A stretch of 64,000 bases of DNA from Paragordius varius (lineage: Eukaryota; Animalia; Nematomorpha): positions 372,001 to 436,000 of the forward strand of contig OZ176057.1 of the NCBI GenBank assembly GCA_964247055.1, read 5' to 3'. Below, piece by piece: positions 16,201 through 44,100 of the stretch (the first letter of the stretch is position 1; each line of letters starts with the position of its first letter). A program made the translations under genes and the position numbers. The notes under the pieces were generated by a model that did not search any database, was not told the DNA's origin, and was given only the letters and a program-made list of their open reading frames with translations.

Positions 16201-18855
16201 TCATCATTTGTTTTTATTAATTTTACCGTAAATTTGACATTTTCAGCGGTAACTATATATACCCAATTTACACTTCAAGAGTCACCTTGAGCACTTCAAG
16301 TTGGTCCTTTGATTTTTTTGTTTTGTTTTTTACTTTTATCCATCAAATCGTGTATCCTTCATTTACTTTATCATTTTTAACCTTTTTTCTATTATTTAAC
16401 ATAAATTTGAAATCAATATCAAGACAAACTGTATGTATTATTTTTTAAAATGGATTATAAGATATTAACCCCTAATTAAAAAATTATAAGTTTTGTGGGT
16501 TATTATTTACAACTTTTCATTAAACATTTAAAAGTTAATAATTTTGTTAAATTGGAAAAAATAGTTTGATACAAAAAAAGTGGTTTTTGAACAAATATTT
16601 TTATTTTTATATGAATAAATATTTAACACTGGGCAACAAATTTTTTTGCCACTCGAGTTTTTTGCATTTTCTTATATTTAGTATCATTTTAACGGTAAAT
16701 CTGAGATAAAAATAATACTTGAGAGAAGAATTTTGTATAATTTGATTTCTTTGATTATGCGCCCTCATTATAAAAATTTTATTAAAAAATGTTTTTCTTT
16801 GAAAATATACAAGTAATTCTCATTTGTAATATATCATTCGAAAGAGTAATCTATAAAATGTATACTAATATGTATTACATTGACAGCTAATATTGGACAC
16901 AAAGAGCGTTCTTTAATTATTATATTTTTAAAACTAATGGATGAAAATAGCTCAAACTTTGTTTATATGGTGATGAATGTTCAAAAAAGATAACAAAAGA
17001 AAGTTTTTTTTATTAAAACATTTTTTTATTGCTTTTATGTTACTCAAAACAGCCATTTTTAAGTTTTTTGATTTTGACAATTACCATCTCATCAATATTA
17101 AGCTAATAATTTCGAAATTTTAAAGATTAAAACAAAGTTTAAGGTATTTTTGATCTTTTATAGCCGTAATCCAAATAACTTTTACATCCGATTGATTTAA
17201 ATGACTTACCACCATTTAAAAGATGCAATTTTTTGCGCTCTTTCGAATGATATAAAATACATGGCTTCATATTTGAAACTTTTAATTTTCGAAATTTCGA
17301 GTTTAATGCTAAATCGGGGCCAAAAATTATCGATAAACTCTAATATAAAAAATTCTTGCAAGCTAGACCAATTCTTTTCAGATATACTAATTATGTTGAA
17401 TGAAATAAATTTTAAATTTACAAGAATGGCATTTAAATAAGTTAAAAGTTGTTGTCTAGTGTAATAAATAAAGAAAATTTATAAATTATGCTGCGAAACA
17501 TGGCAAATAAGTAAAACACAGGAAAATATGCTGGATAATATGGAACAAAGATTGATAAATACATTTGAGCGAACAATCTCTCATGATAAACAAATCCTAA
17601 CAATCTCAAAATATATTCAAATCCGTAGACTTGGCTATTACGGTCACATTCAAAGATTAGATAACGATAATTGGATTAAAAATATAACAAACTTTAAGCC
17701 AAACAAACAAAACAGAGTTGGTCCTCCATCTAGCAATAACATGGGACAAAAACATTACCCAAGACCAACAGGCCAAAAACATAAAAGCCGGGGACTGGTT
17801 AAACAAAAATTCCTTCAATGCAATGATTAAACACCTAAATATCAAAAATTAGTTTTAAAAATAAAAAAATACATGCAAAAATTATGGTTAAAATAAATTT
17901 AAATAAGGACCAATTTGAAGTGTTCAAGGACCAACTTGAAATGTTCAAGGACCAACTTGAAATGTTCAAGGACCCATTTGAAGTGTTCAAGGACACTCTT
18001 GAAGTCATACAGCAAATTAAACGTTTTACCATATTATTAGAATTTACTTGATCTTTTAGCAATTAGTTCCGATTTTATAATTGTGCTCTGAGTTCCCAAA
18101 ACTATAATTTTCGTCTAAAGAAAACTTTTATGATTTAAAATATTATATTACTGAACCGACGTCATCAATTATTATTATTACTTGTAATGTGAGAAAAAAA
18201 TGCCATTTTTGAATTTTTTGTAAATCACAAGTCAGTAAAGACAGTTTTTCGTATTTTATAATTATTTTTATTAACTATTGACACTACATATGCTTAAAAC
18301 TTTTTTAAATCCATCTATTTCTAAAATTAATTCGTAGCTTTCATTGTCTTGAATAAGTTTTATTTTGTTCTTTTTTGGGTCACAGCTTGCTGAAGGCGTG
18401 GATTGGACAATTAAAATTAAATTACATTTTTTGTTTTTGAATAAACGGCTATTAATTTAAAGTGAAAATCGTTTATAGTATAATGTGTTTTACTACTTAA
18501 ACTTTGATTTTAATAAAATTATATATACGGTTTGATTTGATCAATTTTCACATATACAATTATGTCATATCTTTATATCTAAATTAAAAATATTTTTAAG
18601 ACAAATTTTGGGAAACATATATACTTTATTTAGGTCAAAAAATTTACAAATTTACGTTTGTCGCCTTTTAAATTTGTTTTTAGTGGTTTTAAATGCTAAT
18701 TTATAACCGCCTTATAGTTTTTAGCAGAAAATAACCAATTATAACTTTTATATATACCTTTTTGATTTTATTATCTTTAATATTTGTTTTTATCTTGTAG
18801 ACAATACATGAATCGGAAAGGAGGATTCAATAAGCCATTAGATTTTATTGCCTAA
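7237..18855 (+). CDS. SNRNP27: U4/U6.U5 tri-snRNP 27 kDa protein, 6 exons, 120 aa
   Basis: Exons 7237-7252, 7277-7333, 7357-7390, 7412-7470, 15650-15791, 18801-18855; all introns GT-AG with matching phases; total 363 nt. Protein MVSPYRRRSRSRSRDRYGRDHHRKRKSPLRERKRSRS...EQEEMRKLMGFSDFNTTKNKHV...[23 protein letters not shown]: RS-rich N-terminus plus the diagnostic SNRNP27 C-terminus ([22 protein letters not shown] in known orthologues). Confidence 0.95.
8659..9070 (+). pseudogene. Frameshifted Myb/SANT/MADF-like ORF in the left arm, mirrored at ~10060-10390 (-)
   Basis: Joined frames give EEFIFHRYPILY...KLGQLYLEVKKELDYGISLNQIIKMYNNIQYNLKKK, which fits a trihelix MADF/Myb pattern by eye. Harbinger elements are known to carry a Myb-like second ORF. 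Inferred, not HMM-confirmed. Confidence 0.4.
9270..9765 (-). pseudogene. Decayed Harbinger/HARBI1-type (DDE_Tnp_4) transposase fragment
   Basis: Across frameshifts and stops: VPPETVDFI..., FLGYLA..., FGISRSYATRIISYV...WINF, LCIVGAI-CTHVEI, NHNI*ANVDNNEYFTFLGIKYPGRNYS. These match the Harbinger motifs FGIS.ST..RII, GAIDCTH, N.Q...D...F and PG..HD in the correct order. Confidence 0.75.
10500..13676 (-). mobile_element. Full-length RTE-clade non-LTR retrotransposon (APE + RT + PHD-type finger), frameshifted
   Basis: Exact 17-bp TSD GCCATCTAAAAATATTT at 10483-10499 and 13677-13693. APE in ORF 12816-13400 (CCVQETRW, SVYAPQ, GGDLNSH). RT in ORF 11147-12388 (GLHQGSILSPLLF, LYADD). C-terminus in ORF 10639-11196 (KFTYLGD, LYGTETW, RLRWAGH, GRP). 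Confidence 0.95.
14732..15382. mobile_element. Foldback-type MITE, subfamily 1 (21-bp subterminal arrays)
   Basis: TIR TATACCATTTACACTTCAAGAG / CTCTTGAAGTGTAAATGGTATA. Unit TTGAACTGTTCAAGGACCAAC occurs 2-3 times in the left arm and 6 times in the right arm. Confidence 0.85.
16627..17461 (+). mobile_element. Chapaev3-like (CMC) MITE, internally deleted copy
   Basis: TIR CACTGGGCAACAAATTT / AAAGTTGTTGTCTAGTG with TAA on both sides (16624-16626, 17462-17464). Near-identical to 26745-27850 except for a ~240-270 nt internal deletion. Confidence 0.85.
17480..17835 (+). mobile_element. 5'-truncated RTE LINE, 3' fragment
   Basis: ORF 17528-17830 contains RRLGYYGHIQRLDNDNWIKNITNFKPNKQNRVGPP, matching the RLRWAGHIYRAQDTNWIK...KGRP tail of the LINE at 10500-13676. 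Confidence 0.75.
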
Positions 18856-24449: not shown

Positions 24450-27400
24450 TATATGATTTCACTCTTTCCAGCGATCATATCCGTAAACTATTTCGCCATA
24501 GAACCCTGTCTTGGGCGTTCACGCGTTTTAAGTTCAGTTTTGCCATGCCACTCTTAATTGTATCAATCCATCACGTTTTAGGTTGCCCTTTTCCCCTCTT
24601 ACCTTTTTTATCTCTTCTTTCTACATGACCAAACCATCTTAGATTTACCATCACTTTTGCGTTACCGGTTTGATTTCCGTACTTTTTCTTATGTAGACAT
24701 TCCTCACCTTGTCATTCCTCGTTACACCGCACATCAATCTGAGCATTCTCATTTAAGTAACCTCAAAGTGCATCTCTTCTGATTTCTTTATTGCCCATGT
24801 CTGTGCGTTGTACATCATTGTTGTCTGTACAGCAGCACTGTAAATCTTACCCATGACTTTTAAATCAATATTTTTATCTCACCAAACATTTGAAATCTTT
24901 TTATAGTTTGCCCAACTATTTGGAATTCTTAGATTTATAACATGAGTTAAAGAACCATCTGCTAAAATCGCTCCTAAATATTTGCATTCCTTCTAACCTT
25001 TTAATACCCCGTTTTTTCCACCAAAATTTATTGATTCCGTTTTCTCTTTATTAACTTTTAATCCGCATCGTCGTGACACATTAATCCATTTCCCCAACAT
25101 TTCTTTTAATTCATGTAACTCGTCGGACAGCACTATTAGGTCGTCTGCACAAAGAAAATAACCAGCCACCGTGTTGCCCTACTTCTTTTGAAATTTCGTC
25201 CTTGCATATTATAATAGTAACGGCTGATTGGTGGCCCCTGATAGACCCCTTGGCTTATTTCAATAGGATCTGATACTCCGTGGTGCTTTTTAATTTTGGT
25301 ATGGTGTGAATCGTACATGCTTTTTAGAATTTTTATGTAACTTTTAAGGACGTTTTTCCGTCTTAAGCTCCACCATATTGTGCTCCGTGGTAGTCTGTCA
25401 AAAACCTTTTCAATATCGATTAAAATACCATGCAACTCTTTTTTCATTTCTATATGCTTCTCGATTATTCTTACTGCCTGAATCGGATCAATGGTAAACT
25501 TTCCTGGAATAAAACCAAATTGATTATCCTCTATACTAAACATTTATATTCGTTTCTCTAGTGTTTTCTCAAATAACTTCATTGTAGGCGACATCAATCT
25601 TATCCCTCTGTAATTTTTACAATCATTAATATCTTCTTTACCCTTGAAAATTGGAACATTAAAGCTCTCCTTCCATTAGGTTGGTATCATACCTGTAGAA
25701 ACTACATTATTAAAAATATCCGCCAAAAATTAAAGACCTTTCTCTGACATTATTTTCCAACAGTTTGTCAATATCCTCTGGACCTGCAGCCTTATTTATA
25801 GACATCTCTTCTAAACCAGCCTGGACTTTTTTTGTTTCCATAGCGCAGATATATAATCTGGTGCTTCGCGTAAAGTTTTACTGACGCCCAATTCAAGGTC
25901 CTGAAAATATTCTTTCCACCTCTTAAAAATTTTCGCTTGACGAGTAATTTGCCGTTTTTGTCTTTAATAGCCGTCGCGTAAGAGGACCAGTTCAGCTTTA
26001 TTCTGTGTTTTTGTCGAGCAATTTTAAAAACTTTTTTAGACCTTGCTTATTTTCTAACTCCTTGTAATATTATGCCGTTTTTTCTTTTTAATCTTACAAG
26101 CCTAAAAAGTTCCTTATAAATCCTTTTGTATTTTTCCCCGTATTCTGCATGTGGTTAACCACATTTAAAAGCTTTGCTTTTCTCCGCTATTTTAGAATTA
26201 TTTTTTTGTTTTACAGCCATGCTTTTCTATAAACCTGATTTCTACCACCTTTCATTCCGGACAACTTAACTCCCGCTAATTTATTTTTCCACCTAAGACC
26301 AAACATCTGGATCGCTGTTCCTCTAGTATTCCTACCGTTTCTACAAATTTTACTTAACTATTTCTTAAGCTTACGTTTTTGTATTTATTGGTATATCTGT
26401 CATATCACATATTTAAATTTGTTATGTACTAATCTGCAGAGGTGTGACTTTGCAGACCACAGCAAACTTTAAAGACTTTTGCGGTATTGATTTGTGTCAT
26501 CTTTCCACTTTTGTGAATAATTAAATATGGCTATGCCTTTTAGTAAAAATGATATTTGTTAAAGCTAAGTTATAAGATTGAGCAAATCTTAATAAACTAG
26601 CCCCTACTCCTTCACCCCGTAGCCTTTTCCGCCATGCCAAGGTTCACAACCTGTCCTATTTTGTGCCACATGCCTATTGAACCATAAAATACGATTTCTC
26701 TGTCTTTCGTTAATAAAGTCATTTCTGCGTGTAACAAATCATAACACTGGACAACAAATTTTTCTGCCACTCGAGTTTTTTGAGTTTTCTGATATTTAAT
26801 ATCATTTTAACAGTAAATCTGAAATAAAAAATATAACTCGTTGAAAGAATTTTGTAGAATTTGATTTTTTTGATTATGCGCCCTCTTTATCAAAATTTTA
26901 CTAAAAAATATTTTTCTTTGAAAATATACAAGTAATGCTCATTTGTAATATATCATTCGAAAGAGTAATAAAAACTCTATAAAATGTATACTAATATGTA
27001 TTACATCGACAGTTAATATTGGACACAAAGAGCGACAAACGCGCGAAGCGAAAGCATTTTTTTTAATTATTATATTTTTAAAACTAATGGATGAAAATAG
27101 CTCAAACTGTGTTTAGATGGTGATGAATGTCCAAAAAAAATAACACAAGAAAGTTTTTTTAATTAAAACATTTTTTTATTGCTTTTATATCACTCAAAAC
27201 AACCATTTTTAAGTTTTTTGTTTTTTAAAAATTACCATCTCATCCATATTAATTTATTTTCTTTATAAGGCTGATAATTTCGAAATTTTAAAGATAAAAA
27301 CAAGGTTTAATGTATTTTTGATCTTTTATAGCCATTATGTAATAAATTTACAGTTATAACTATGCATTTTAATATCCACTAGGTAAAATATTTATGATAA

Positions 27401-28200
27401 TAATAATTTTTATCAAAAAAGCAAACCAAAAGCTTTTTCAAACATTTTTTTAAAATTAAATACTAATATAACCCTAATAATTATATTTAGTTAATTTATA
27501 TGATTTTCAAGTTAGTTTGTCTGTGAAAATTCATGACTTATTTAAGGATTGAAAATTTCGACCATTTAAATCCAAATAACTTTTACATCCGATTGATTTA
27601 AATGACTTACTACCATTTAAAAGATGCAGTTTTTTGCGCTCTTTCGAATCATATCTAAAACTTTTAATTTTCGAAATTTCGAGTTTAATGTTAAATCGGG
27701 GCCAAAAATTATCGAAAAACTCTAATATAAAAAAATTCTTCCATGCTAGAACAATATTCTTTTCAGATATACTAATTATGTATTTTAATGAAATAAATTT
27801 TAAATTTACAAGAATGGCAGTTAAAAAAAGTTAAAATTTGTTGTCTAGTGTAATCGTTCTCAGGTTTACTTAACCCTATAACGCCAAAGATAGTAAAAAC
27901 CCTATTAAATAGGTCGACATTTATTATTCTACTGTCAGCACATCTAACCTCAATTACTTGATTGGCAAATTTTGCACACACTATTATGCGACCCCACTGT
28001 AACCATCCGTAGAACTTGACGTCTTAGTGCCGTTTCCAACAAAAAATTTACCATTTTACCCTCATAGTTTCAATTAAATCATATAACTTACTTATTAACA
28101 AACCAACATTTATACTGGCAAAACACACTCTGCAACATTGCTTCTCCTTATTGGCATACCTCCGTGCAGCGACTGGCCAGGTCTGACCTACACGCCTTAC
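24450..28200 (-). mobile_element. Near full-length degenerate RTE LINE, split in its endonuclease region by a Chapaev3-like MITE
   Basis: APE: VCFASINVGLL and QVIEVRCADSRII (ORF 27772-27981), continuing past the MITE with WHGGKGYG. RT: FGFIPGK and IDIEKVFDRLPR (ORF 25136-25543), then FLCADDLIVL. RTE-type tail near 24450-24600. No TSD found. Confidence 0.85.
26745..27850 (+). mobile_element. Chapaev3-like (CMC) MITE, longer copy (1106 bp)
   Basis: TIR CACTGGACAACAAATTT / AAATTTGTTGTCTAGTG with TAA TSD at 26742-26744 and 27851-27853. Confidence 0.88.
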
Positions 28201-37895: not shown

Positions 37896-38448
37896 ATACT
37901 TCACTCATTTTAGTCCTTTGATTCAAATTGGGGTAGTTAGATACCCCAGGCCTGTTTAAAATCAAATAGTTTAAAAAGTATGGAAGCAATCGAAACCATG
38001 GCAAGATTTTGCACTTATATAACATTAATAAACCGAAATATATAAAAAATTTTTATTTAAAAATACTTGATATTACTTATTTTGAGCTAAAACTTAAAGA
38101 TAAAAATTTAGTCAACGTGACATGTGTCAAATTGTAAAATTAAAAAATAATACAAAATAAACCGCTTTTTCTATTTCTATCAATGTTAGATGTAATTTAT
38201 ATAAAAAAATAAGCTTTAGTTTTACATGAAGACGATATTTTGCAAAGTTTTTGTAAAATAAAAATGGCGTCGAAGTAGTTTGAGGTGGAACTTTTTTTTT
38301 CAAAACAAAATTTTATCAAGATATTTTGGCATATTTATATAATATTTATCAGATAGAAGCATAAATTTAAATTGGCACCGTTTCCTTCTGTTGTTTTTTA
38401 TTTAAATTTAGTCTGGGGTATTTAGATACCCCAGTTTGGATCGAAGTG
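37896..38448 (-). mobile_element. piggyBac-like MITE, copy 3
   Basis: Same family as 5653-6229. TTAA at 37892-37895 and 38449-38452; one end slightly truncated. Confidence 0.78.
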
Positions 38449-38593
38449 TTAATACATTAAATATAGTATAATTAAATAATATATTTATTTTTATGAGAAG
38501 GAGTATCCTAACCAATTATAATATCATTGCACTACACACAACAAATTTCGACTTTTTTTAACTGCCATATGTGGAAATTTAAATTTTAATTAA

Positions 38594-39154
38594 CACTTCG
38601 ATTCAAATTGGGGCATCTAAATACCCCAGACTAAATTTAAATAAAAAACAACAGAAGGAAACGGTGCCAATTTAAATTTATGCTTCTATCTGATAAATAT
38701 TATATAAATATGCCAAAACATCTTGATAAAATTTTGTTTTGAAAAAAAAAGTTCCACCTCAAATTACTTCGACGCCATTTTTATTTTACAAAAATTTTGC
38801 TAAATATCGTCTTTATTTAATTTTAAGGGTAAAACTAAATCTATTTTTTTATATACATTACATCTAACATTGATAGAAATAGAAAAAGCGGTTTAGTTTG
38901 TATAATTTTTCAATTTTTCAATTTGACACATGTCACATTGACGAAATTTTTACCTTTCGGCTTTAGCTTAAAATAATAATATCAAGTATTTTTGAATAAA
39001 ATTTTTTATATATTTCGGTTTATTATAGTGCAAAATTTTGCCATGATTTTGATTGCATAGATACTTTTTAAAGTAGTTGATTTTAAACAGGCTTGGGGTA
39101 TCCAACTACCCCAATTTGAATCGAAGGACAAAATGAGTGTGTTGTATCCAAGTG
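38594..39154 (+). mobile_element. piggyBac-like MITE, copy 4, head-to-head with copy 3
   Basis: TTAA|CACTTCGATTCAAATT...GTATCCAAGTG|TTAA, with TTAA at 38590-38593 and 39155-39158. Confidence 0.82.
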
Positions 39155-40339: not shown

Positions 40340-41160
40340 TAATGGGCTTGTGTAGTCGCGCTGCAAGAGCCTTTTTGTAATCAAAAAGACAAAATTAGCA
40401 GTCTGATTTAAATTTATATGATTTTTCGGTTCAAAGTCAAATCATTGGCACGCTAAAAGGCATTGCTTTATTGTTATTTTTCCAATCAATTAAATTTATA
40501 CGGCATGAATCGCATATTTTTTTCGGAGCCCAAGGTTTGGCAGCATCTATTGTATCAAAACATTTCGAAAAAAGTTGTTCTATTGTGTTTCCTAAATTTC
40601 TTAATTTTTTTAAAAAATCCATCGTCCGCAAACATACAAAATTTGTTCGGATCATTTTTAGAATTGCGTTCTATATTATAAAGATAAATACCTGCTTGCG
40701 GGATCTCGCTCGTGTCAACGATTTGATTCAAAAACTTAAACATAAATGCACTAGGAAAGTATATTTTGGATATATTTTGATAAAATTTAAAAAACTACCT
40801 CTAATGAAAATTACATTATAAAAGCGACAAAAACTTTTTATAAAGAAAAAATATTTCTTCATTCTTAAAGAGCAATGTTAATTGAAATTGTTATTAATCT
40901 TAATTTTTTAGCAATCATTAGAGTTTTAGATTTTCGCTCACAAAAAAACGTCAATTTTTGCTATTATAAATTCGAAATTTATGACTATATTGATTAAGAT
41001 CATTTTTATAATCTATTACGCTCTATCGATTGATATATTATTTTATTTTTTGAAAAATCCTTTCAAGTAGCCCATTTTTTTTTTAATTTTTGGTATAGGT
41101 ATACTATTAGCTAACAGAAACTAAAATAATATCATTTGGCAGAAAAATTTGTTGTCTAGT
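40340..41160 (-). mobile_element. Chapaev3-type DNA transposon relic: left TIR plus N-terminal transposase fragment
   Basis: TIR-like CTAGACAACAAATTTTTCTGCCA at 41159-41137 (minus strand). Transposase motifs across ORFs 40555-40743 and 40437-40655 and beyond: NDPNKFC(YVCG), KPWAPKKICDSC, W...MPFSVPMI, EPKNH, DC*FC. These match the Chapaev3 N-terminal Zn-binding region as recalled. Right end not found. Confidence 0.72.
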
Positions 41161-44100
41161 AGTGTTGGGAAATAATTGGTGCATTTAATATATCTATAAT
41201 TTCTTCATCGCTAATTAAATTTTCTTCAAGTGATTTCAAGCAGAGTGCGCCACAGCGAATTCCTAAAACAAAGAAAAAGTTTTATTTAAAACAAACGAAA
41301 ACTTAAAAATAAACAAACTTAAAATAATACAGTTTTTGTGTATATATTAAATGTTACTTATGTTTTTATTATAAATTATTAAAGAATTGCAAGTATGAAT
41401 TTACATTAAAAATTAAAATTACACGGACAAAACGCAAAAATATAAAGGCAAATATTTTTTTCAAAAAAAACCATACTGAAACTTATTTCTTCTTATATAA
41501 ATTATTTACTTTCCACTTAAAAATATAAAATTGATTGTGTTACCAATATACATCTCTATATACTTTGCAATTTCAACAATGCATTATAATTAAAAAAATG
41601 ACATTTAAAAGGTATGGCTATATTTTAGAAAAAATATTTGTACTCATATTTTTACGTGTCCGTATATAATTTTAATTTTTACTGTAAAACATACATTTTT
41701 ACATCTTTTTGAACTATAAATTTGGTGTATATTACACCTCTACTCCTTTGCAAACGAAAATGTAAAATAGTAGGTCTCTTAGTTTTAGTATTATCAAATA
41801 ATCTTTACAGTATTTTACCAGATTGAATGGCTCCAGATATGGTTCCTTTCTCATAATTTGCCGTTTCAGTCCCTCCAAAAAATATCATATTTTTGGTGAC
41901 ATTATTGTTAAGTTTATCATTACAATTTTGCTCTATATTAAGGCTATTAAACAATTGTAAATTTATGAGATTTTGAGTTTTTCCAATACAAGGAACCGAA
42001 ATAGGACCACCAAAACACAAAGGCTCCATTCTCCAATCCTATAAGATTATAAAAAAAAAACCGTTTAAATTTAAAAGTTAATATTTATTAAAGACGTGAA
42101 TTACGTTTTTTTGTTAAGTCTGGCAAAAAATATGATATACTATATAAAAATGGTAAAAATTTGGGTTAGAAATATCTCAACTATACAACATATTTAGTAT
42201 TCCAGACTGATTAAAATTGCCTAGTAGAGTGGTTTAAAACAAATGACTTTATATTTAATGATGAAAATTTTATAAGAATCATTCAAATCGATTGTAAAAA
42301 AATATAAAGACAAATATTTTTTTTCAAATAACCGCTCTACATTAAAACTATGAATTTTTAATATACATTGTCTTTTTTGCAAAGTTAATAAGGATGTATA
42401 TTGGTAACACAATCAACTATTTATTTTACGATGTAATATAATAATAATTTATATAGAAAATATTGTGTTCAAAAAATGGTTGCCTTTTGATCTAAATATA
42501 TATTTATTTATGTTTTTACTATTAATTTCATTTACTGTATCTATATATATATATATAAATGGTCAAACATGGGGTTTAATATCACTAAACCCTACAAATT
42601 TAACATACCTAACTACAAAATAATATTTTAATACGGTGGTTTATTAAACAATATTATAGTTATTATAATAAAAGATTTGAATCAAATCGTTTGAGTAATT
42701 GCAAAAAATAACAAAAAAACCTTTTCAAAATAATTGAGGAAAGATTTAGCCTCTGTAGTTTTCCAGACTGCATTAAGGTACGATGTTATGGCTACAATAC
42801 GTTCTTCTTGCTATATATTAAAGAAATCAATCAATTTTAATTATTTTAGCTTAAAATTTGAAAGGAAATATATGAAATTATAAAGTTATGATGATCTTAA
42901 TCAATAGGAAAAAATTAATTTTGAATTCAAGGACTTTCTCTATAATAAAAAAATTAATATATTTTAGTATTAAACCGGTTTTTGTATCCAATAATCATAA
43001 TTATCAGCACCGATGAACCCACTTAAAACGCCAAGGACCACACTTGATTTAACTAAAAGTAGGTAAAAATTTAAATTATATGACAAAACTACATATATTT
43101 GCTGAAAAAACAATCATATTTTTACGAGAATTATATTAAGATTATAAATAATTTATGTAAGAAAAGGTTAGTAAAGTGTAGTTTTTTGATAAAAATTTCT
43201 CTTTATAATTTAAATTTTTATGCCATTCTTAAAGCAAACGCAATAATTTTTCAAATGTTAAATATGTTGCGTTTTTTGAAAAAATGCTTTTGACTGCAAA
43301 AATGTTAACTATACCATTTACAGTTCAAATTCACCCTTGAACAATTCAAATTCACCCTCGAACAATTCAAATTCACCCTTGAACAATTCAAATTCACCTT
43401 TGAACAATTCAAATTCACCCTAAAAATAATTTATGTATTTTCAAACTAATATAACTCATTATTAATATGAAATATATGTTTTGTATAGTTTATTATTTTT
43501 TTCAGTATTAGTTTAATTTAAAACAAAATTTTTATTTTTTAAAAATATATATGGTAATTTTTAGTATTAAAAACATATATTTTATATGAGGGTGAATTTG
43601 AATTGTTCGAGGGTGAATTTGAATTGTTCAAGGGTGAATTTGAATTGTTTAAGGGTGAATTTGAATTGTTTAAGGGTGAAATTGAATTGTAAATGGTATA
43701 TACTTTTATGTTTTCAGTTAAAGAAAATTAAAATTACCTGTAAAATTTCTATCGTGACAACTAATGATTGAAGTATCAAAGCAACAATCGAAAGGAGCCA
43801 CACAATAAGAACTTCCCTGCATTTGGTATCGGAAGCAATTATTAACAGAGTCGAAATAGGAATACCTTTATATAATAAAGTATAAAAATGAAATATATTA
43901 TATACAAAACGTAAAAACATATAGACAAATATTTTTATCTAGACAGCTATACTTTTTAACTTTGATTATATTATTAAATTTGTAAAATAAAATGTTTTAC
44001 CAATTTTTTAATTCATACTTTGCTTATTAAACCAATGAGTTATATTTAAAAAGCGTTTATAAATAGGTTTTAAAAAATATTTGTTTCAGTCTTTACGTCT

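Follow-up and report, generated by a model that had tools for sequence, protein, structure and literature searches.

A Chapaev3-type transposon at the stop codon of an oxidase-like gene in Paragordius varius probably supplies the stop and 3' end of the gene

In a 64,000-nucleotide stretch of the genome of the nematomorph Paragordius varius (assembly GCA_964247055.1, contig OZ176057.1, positions 372,001 to 436,000; hereafter the window, in whose numbering positions are given), an oxidase-like gene on the minus strand ends in the terminal repeat of a DNA transposon. We consider it very probable that a Chapaev3-type element inserted by cut-and-paste between the stop codon of this gene and the sense codon preceding it, duplicating the target CAA, and that the present stop and 3' end are derived from the element. 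Both tips of the element, the target duplication, an empty site in two paralogous copies of the gene, and the position of the old stop codon can all be read directly in the DNA.

The last exon of the gene (41262-41156, minus strand; acceptor AG at 41264-41263) encodes G-IRCGALCLKSLEENLISDEEIIDILNAPIISQHY-stop, and its 3' end reads ...CCA ATT ATT TCC CAA CAC TAC TAG. In this frame the Gln codon occupies 41167-41165, His 41164-41162, Tyr 41161-41159 and the TAG that would be the stop in present use 41158-41156. In the consensus of the terminal repeat, this TAG is bases 4-6. From 41160 to 41137 (24 nt), the minus strand is perfectly identical to the terminal repeat, which bears out an earlier note on this DNA that had read the last codons as CAA CAC TAC TAG with a transposon end lying at the stop. 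The repeat is well represented both locally and globally: a 19-mer taken from it, with up to three mismatches allowed, had three matches in the window against 0.10 expected, while the 24-mer, with up to two mismatches allowed, had 499 matches in the 110.6-Mb genome against 0 for a reversed control.

The element that begins at the stop is a Chapaev3-type relic of 2,635 bp (41164-38530, minus strand), lying in the gene's own orientation. It starts with CAC at 41164, ends with GTG at 38530, and is colinear from tip to tip with a full copy of the family elsewhere in the genome (L043 299-2838), which it follows in six BLAST blocks to position 2832 of 2838. Its left terminal repeat (41137-41164, minus strand) reads CACTACTAGACAAC, with a private 3-bp duplication relative to the family sequence CACTAGACAAC, and supplies His, Tyr and the stop. 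The right terminal repeat (38530-38556, minus strand) ends ...GTTGTGTGTAGTG and, set against ...GTTGTCTAGTG, shows one substitution and a private gain of 2 bp; read inwards, this tip is CACTACACACAAC. The variants at the left and right tips are each unique in the genome. Beyond the last G of the right tip (38530), the minus strand continues as CAA TGA TAT TAT AAT TGG. A three-copy alignment, described below, identifies the CAA at 38527-38529 as the right copy of the target duplication and the CAA at 41165-41167, the last ancestral sense codon, as the left copy, both on the minus strand.

The earlier note had matched the sequence at the stop to the terminal repeat of a miniature inverted-repeat transposable element (MITE). 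The shared repeat is real, as the genome-wide matches demonstrate, and the MITEs at 26745-27850 and 16627-17461 carry the ends quoted for them. The copy at the gene is not itself that MITE, because its sequence departs from the MITE interior after 24 nt and follows a 2.5-kb family instead. It lacks the part corresponding to L043 938-1931, the presumed catalytic portion including a 174-residue frame, which the 2.5-kb copies keep. What remains of the N-terminal protein is a relic of two overlapping frames at 40743-40437 on the minus strand, Cys-rich and zinc-finger-like (zf-AD, 19 bits, under the cut-off), with relatives elsewhere in the genome at 43-80% identity. These transposase-like frames begin 421-510 nt from the left tip and share the strand of the oxidase gene, a correction to the earlier note, which had put a transposase relic about 450 nt downstream.

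The ends of the family were defined from its other copies. A genome search with the 866 nt after the Gln codon found four copies, which match from query base 6 (41160) onwards and are 93% identical to it across the initial 121 nt, then 84%. Because the flanks of these copies are unlike one another until CACTAG, the left tip of the family is fixed at that point. Three full copies (L043 299-2838, L044 306-2861 and L045 373-2910), each of about 2,540 bp, start with CACTAG, end with CTAGTG, and are bounded by identical 3-bp duplications: TTA, TAA and TAT. The two compared directly are 98% identical, and all three have the same sequence at both tips and intact target duplications, which suggests that these copies moved recently. 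We also sampled 30 MITE copies with the same tip and located the other end in 28, of which 25 had identical 3-bp duplications. The duplication was TTA or TAA (TWA) in 25 of the 30 copies, it was preceded by A in 29, and the leading C was present at 28 of the 30 ends.

Assignment of the family to Chapaev3 is based on these tips and target duplications. A Pfam search of the family's reading frames recognised nothing. In Atlas, which compares language-model features, the 174-residue frame (L043:1217-1738) lay nearest to RAG1 ZnC2/ZnH2 core clusters (score 0.97) and also near Plavaka and Transposase_21 clusters, the scores of the three kinds spanning 0.97-0.90, with recognition below the reliable level. 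These neighbours fit a transposase of the Chapaev-Mirage-CACTA (CMC) type and provide only a lead.

An empty site is provided by two duplicates of the gene, found by a genome search with the last two exons, neither of which contains the element. One, the C8 duplicate (G000:C8:1467645-1469261, minus strand), has a last exon (1467645-1467764) that is 92% identical to that of the window at the DNA level; the other, the C2 duplicate (G000:C2:14696538-14697374, plus strand), has a last exon (14697306-14697374) that is 82% identical. Since they hold intron sequence, they are DNA duplicates and not processed copies. The C8 duplicate runs without a gap past ...CCAATTATT into TATTACAATTGGTTAG..., and the C2 duplicate runs past ...CCAATTATT into GATAGTAAAATTGGTTAGGAACC...AAAAATAAAT.... 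The sequence beyond the right tip of the window copy, TGATATTATAATTGGTTAGGATAC...AAAAATAAAT, corresponds to the continuation of the duplicates after the last exon. When the three copies were aligned, the left flank of the window copy ended and its right flank started on the same three columns, CAA, the signature of a 3-bp target duplication. Two other placements of the left boundary were considered and rejected, one in which the first base of the tip had changed from C to T (with CAC as the duplication) and one in which the first base had been lost; only with CAA|CAC are the two copies of the duplication identical and the C8 sequence matched without gaps.

The same alignment locates the old stop. 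If the duplicated CAA is taken a single time, the window sequence is ATT ATT TCC CAA TGA and that of the C8 duplicate ATT ATT ACA CTA TAA; because the two stretches are equal in length, the TGA of the window and the TAA of C8 fall at the same codon. The ancestral stop, TGA, now lies at 38524-38526 on the minus strand, 2.6 kb downstream of the frame. It is followed by a remnant of about 70 nt of the ancestral 3' untranslated region (3'UTR; 38454-38523, minus strand, with AATAAA at 38489-38484), which is homologous to the post-exon sequence of both duplicates and is cut off by a MITE copy at 37902-38453. Downstream of that MITE, the window is again colinear with the C2 duplicate, in six blocks from 37802 to 36606. 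The C2 duplicate has lost one base at the junction, where its frame runs on for a few codons, and is missing 10 nt from a more upstream part of the exon. Both duplicated regions (G000:C8:1467645-1472994 and G000:C2:14696538-14697374; L051, L052, L053 and L055) are partial and decayed, and that on C8 is without the middle exons.

These observations suggest the following course of events. The element would have inserted in the gene's orientation between the Gln codon and the stop, with CAA duplicated as the target. With a consensus tip, the frame would then have read CAA CAC TAG, or Gln-His-stop, one codon longer than before. Because the family starts with CAC TAG, any copy that lands in the sense orientation on a codon boundary would be expected to add a single residue to the protein and then terminate it. 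A later, private 3-bp duplication in the tip would have produced the present CAA CAC TAC TAG, or Gln-His-Tyr-stop, and the end of the protein would have changed from ...SQ to ...SQHY. The old TGA, the old 3'UTR and the old AATAAA would have been pushed 2.6 kb downstream. Each of these remodelling steps can be read directly because the empty site was kept in two duplicates in the same genome. Private changes at both tips probably immobilised the window copy.

Downstream of the new stop, the first two hexamers of the polyadenylation (poly(A)) type are an ATTAAA (41087-41082) and an AATAAA (41047-41042), both on the minus strand and within the element. The AATAAA is where the earlier note had placed it and is common to other element copies, and the ATTAAA is nearer to the stop. 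That note had judged the stop, the 3'UTR and the nearest AATAAA to be transposon-derived in appearance, and our analysis supports this: the stop, the 3'UTR now following it and both hexamers are sequence of a Chapaev3-kind element that lies in the gene's orientation. The mRNA is predicted to end inside the element. RNA folding of the new 3'UTR revealed no unusual structure (z = 0.78).

We examined the identity of the gene by protein family searches, all of them made exon by exon. Candidate exons, all open frames, are spread from 54018 to 41156. The exon at 54018-53749 encodes IIGGGLSGL, a GxGxxG motif, and matched NAD_binding_8 at 22.2 bits against a cut-off of 21.9. Two colinear matches to Amino_oxidase (PF01593; cut-off 19.8) were detected, at 15.2 bits (profile positions 231-259) and 13.3 bits (profile positions 403-436), the latter in the penultimate exon. 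This exon (41819-42038, minus strand; acceptor AG at 42040-42039, donor GT at 41818-41817) is an open frame that carries the C-terminal flavin adenine dinucleotide (FAD) motif ...FFGGTETANYEKGTISGAIQS-G. Joined across the last splice, the residues GAIQSG-IRCGA form the FAD motif that is usual at the C-terminus of flavin amine oxidases. In Atlas, PF01593 was present in 30 of 30 named matches to the penultimate exon, and PDB matches of this exon to amine oxidases over the FAD motif were weak (MAO-B over 26 residues, E 0.97). Pfam and PDB searches of the remaining candidate exons added nothing.

Searches for relatives were unproductive. A six-frame scan of the genome with PF01593 hit three other places, missed this gene and recovered no paralogs, and word searches with a 142-residue exon and the 77-residue penultimate exon found no orthologues. 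A whole-library HMMER search with the penultimate exon returned two matches, neither of which was accepted as a relative: the top one is a tandem-repeat protein that matches an Asn-rich insert of the query, and the second covers the same Asn-rich part. Separately, the first coding exon contains a candidate 42-nt in-frame GT-AG intron at 53903-53862 on the minus strand, between the GxGxxG and GGR motifs, removal of which would give ...ILEGTKSTGGRL.

Whether the TAG and the element's 3' end matter to the host depends on the state of the gene. One alternative accepts the structure as described but holds that the gene no longer functions, having died when it lost its 3'UTR or before that, so that a transposon-derived stop has no biological role. 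In favour of this view, the gene is known here from DNA sequence, its exon-wise Amino_oxidase scores fall under the cut-off, the word and whole-library searches found no relatives, it has two decayed duplicates, and transposon-filled introns stretch it over 13 kb. However, all recognised exons of the window copy are open and its last two introns begin and end with the standard GT and AG, whereas both duplicates carry in-frame stops or frameshifts in the shared exons. At the 122 exon sites for which a three-way alignment was available, private changes are also far fewer in the window copy (2) than in C8 (12) or C2 (7). An unfiltered three-way contrast of rates (2/220 in exons versus 66/811 in introns) was set aside: its intron columns were poorly aligned, and a strict filter left exons only. 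Moreover, the element differs by 7-18% from the copies closest to it and carries a MITE insertion of its own, so its arrival is not recent, yet the reading frame of the gene is still intact.

We regard a dead copy as unlikely, although it is the least improbable of the alternatives, and we infer that the gene is probably still alive. It is plausible, and we suggest it tentatively, that a gene under constraint has long taken its stop, whole 3'UTR and poly(A) signal from a Chapaev3 tip, with the indels in the tips locking the element in place.

A second alternative, which the earlier note had proposed, is that the insertion cut off a longer C-terminus, for example a MAO-like hydrophobic anchor, and altered the destination of the protein, leaving a displaced coding tail beyond the right terminal repeat. 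The protein does end without a hydrophobic anchor, its present tail (EENLISDEEIIDILNAPIISQHY) being acidic, and the stop is indeed transposon sequence. However, the frame beyond the right tip, which we located at 38530, meets TGA (38526-38524) immediately after the duplicated CAA, leaving no coding tail there. Neither of the element-free paralogs needs a gap to be aligned over the junction, and the C8 stop is at the same codon. The last exon also offers no donor for splicing to another exon: its sole GT sits at 41253, and since no GT follows, the stop cannot be bypassed by splicing. Because the TGA stands directly after CAA and C8 stops at the same codon, the protein has gained two residues and lost none. 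With the insertion, the tail after the FAD motif grew from 19 residues to 21; it is acidic and has no hydrophobic stretch. Trimming is accordingly very improbable, and a change of localisation through anchor loss fails with it, as there was no anchor before the insertion either. Masking of a C-terminal peroxisomal signal by the extension was also considered and rejected, as neither -ISQ nor -QHY resembles the SKL-type consensus.

The idea that chance or low complexity accounts for the 24-nt match, with no transposon end at the stop, has only the A+T richness of the region in its favour and can be dismissed, given a repeat of about 500 copies with no match for the reversed control, homology to full elements over 2.6 kb to a matching right tip, and the empty site in the paralogs.

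Some observations nevertheless weigh against an insertion of a Chapaev3-type element that now ends a working gene, and it should be read with them in mind. The target here is CAA, with C before it and T after it, whereas the family norm is TWA with A before it. A 3-base match would arise by chance about once in 64 for one chosen alignment, and both tips fit the consensus only with small private indels. AATAAA occurs about once per 330 nt per strand in the window, which is 73% A+T, and because the hexamer is so frequent its presence alone proves nothing; that the TAG and the poly(A) hexamers of the element are used is a prediction from the DNA. The gene family was assigned from weak exon-wise evidence, with no orthologue found by the word and library searches. 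Finally, the counts of private changes are small, and the intron control for them failed, as the introns did not align three ways.

Other repeats in and around the element were also observed. An unrelated MITE is nested near the right end of the element (38589-39139, plus strand), where it breaks colinearity with L043 between positions 2778 and 2777. It is 90% identical to the copy at 37902-38453, in inverted orientation, and 96% identical over 232 nt. The two copies, each of about 550 bp, are separated by 135 nt that hold the right tip, the old stop and the old 3'UTR; since the pair is inverted, any read-through RNA would fold into a long hairpin. Within the Chapaev3-type family, the left repeat of L043, L044 and L045 reads ...TTTTTTGGCCA, while that of the window copy and the MITEs reads ...TTTTTCTGCCA. 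Because the window copy and the MITEs have TTTTTCTGCCA in common, the MITEs may stem from an older subfamily that included the window copy. Two of the MITE copies, L003 and L004 (G000:C1:6379305 and 6385598), are 6.3 kb apart and, as their flanks are identical, belong to a local duplication and are not separate insertions.

What distinguishes this locus is an insertion exactly at the stop, a minimal change to the protein, and an empty site that survives in two duplicates. It provides a worked example of a DNA transposon exchanging the stop and 3' end of a gene while leaving the protein nearly untouched, and it corrects the attractive but wrong inference that an anchor was lost and the protein relocated. 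It also adds a record of Chapaev3 target-site behaviour in a little-studied genome.

Compared with the flavin amine oxidases (PF01593, including MAO-A and MAO-B), the gene shares an N-terminal GxGxxG dinucleotide-binding exon and the C-terminal motif ...FFGGTET...G.ISGAIQSG-IR.GA, and its weak Pfam matches are colinear. It differs from members of that family in being very divergent, with no exon above the Amino_oxidase cut-off and marginal PDB matches. In contrast to the mitochondrial MAO-A and MAO-B, which have a C-terminal hydrophobic anchor, it has none, now or before the insertion, and its paralogs end alike.

The published hallmarks of Chapaev3, a group of the CMC superfamily, are CAC...GTG tips, a 3-bp TWA duplication and insertion between A and T (PMC4079192). 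The family in this genome has the same tips, TWA duplications and preceding A, and the study that described these hallmarks likewise made use of paralogous empty sites (PMC4079192). Unlike the typical site, A-TWA-T, that of the window copy is a CAA target, and the copy has private indels in its tips, a nested MITE and no counterpart of the presumed catalytic part.

It is well documented that transposable element sequences, the terminal regions of DNA transposons among them, can serve host genes as 3' ends or poly(A) sites (PMC2553571). As in the cases of Lee, Ji and Tian (2008; PMC2553571), a transposon terminal region here forms the end of a host gene. In contrast to those cases, the element also replaces the stop codon, the protein changes by two residues, the host is an invertebrate and poly(A) use is predicted. 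Seen beside them, the locus is an ordinary, clean case of known transposon-derived 3' ends and opens no new question.

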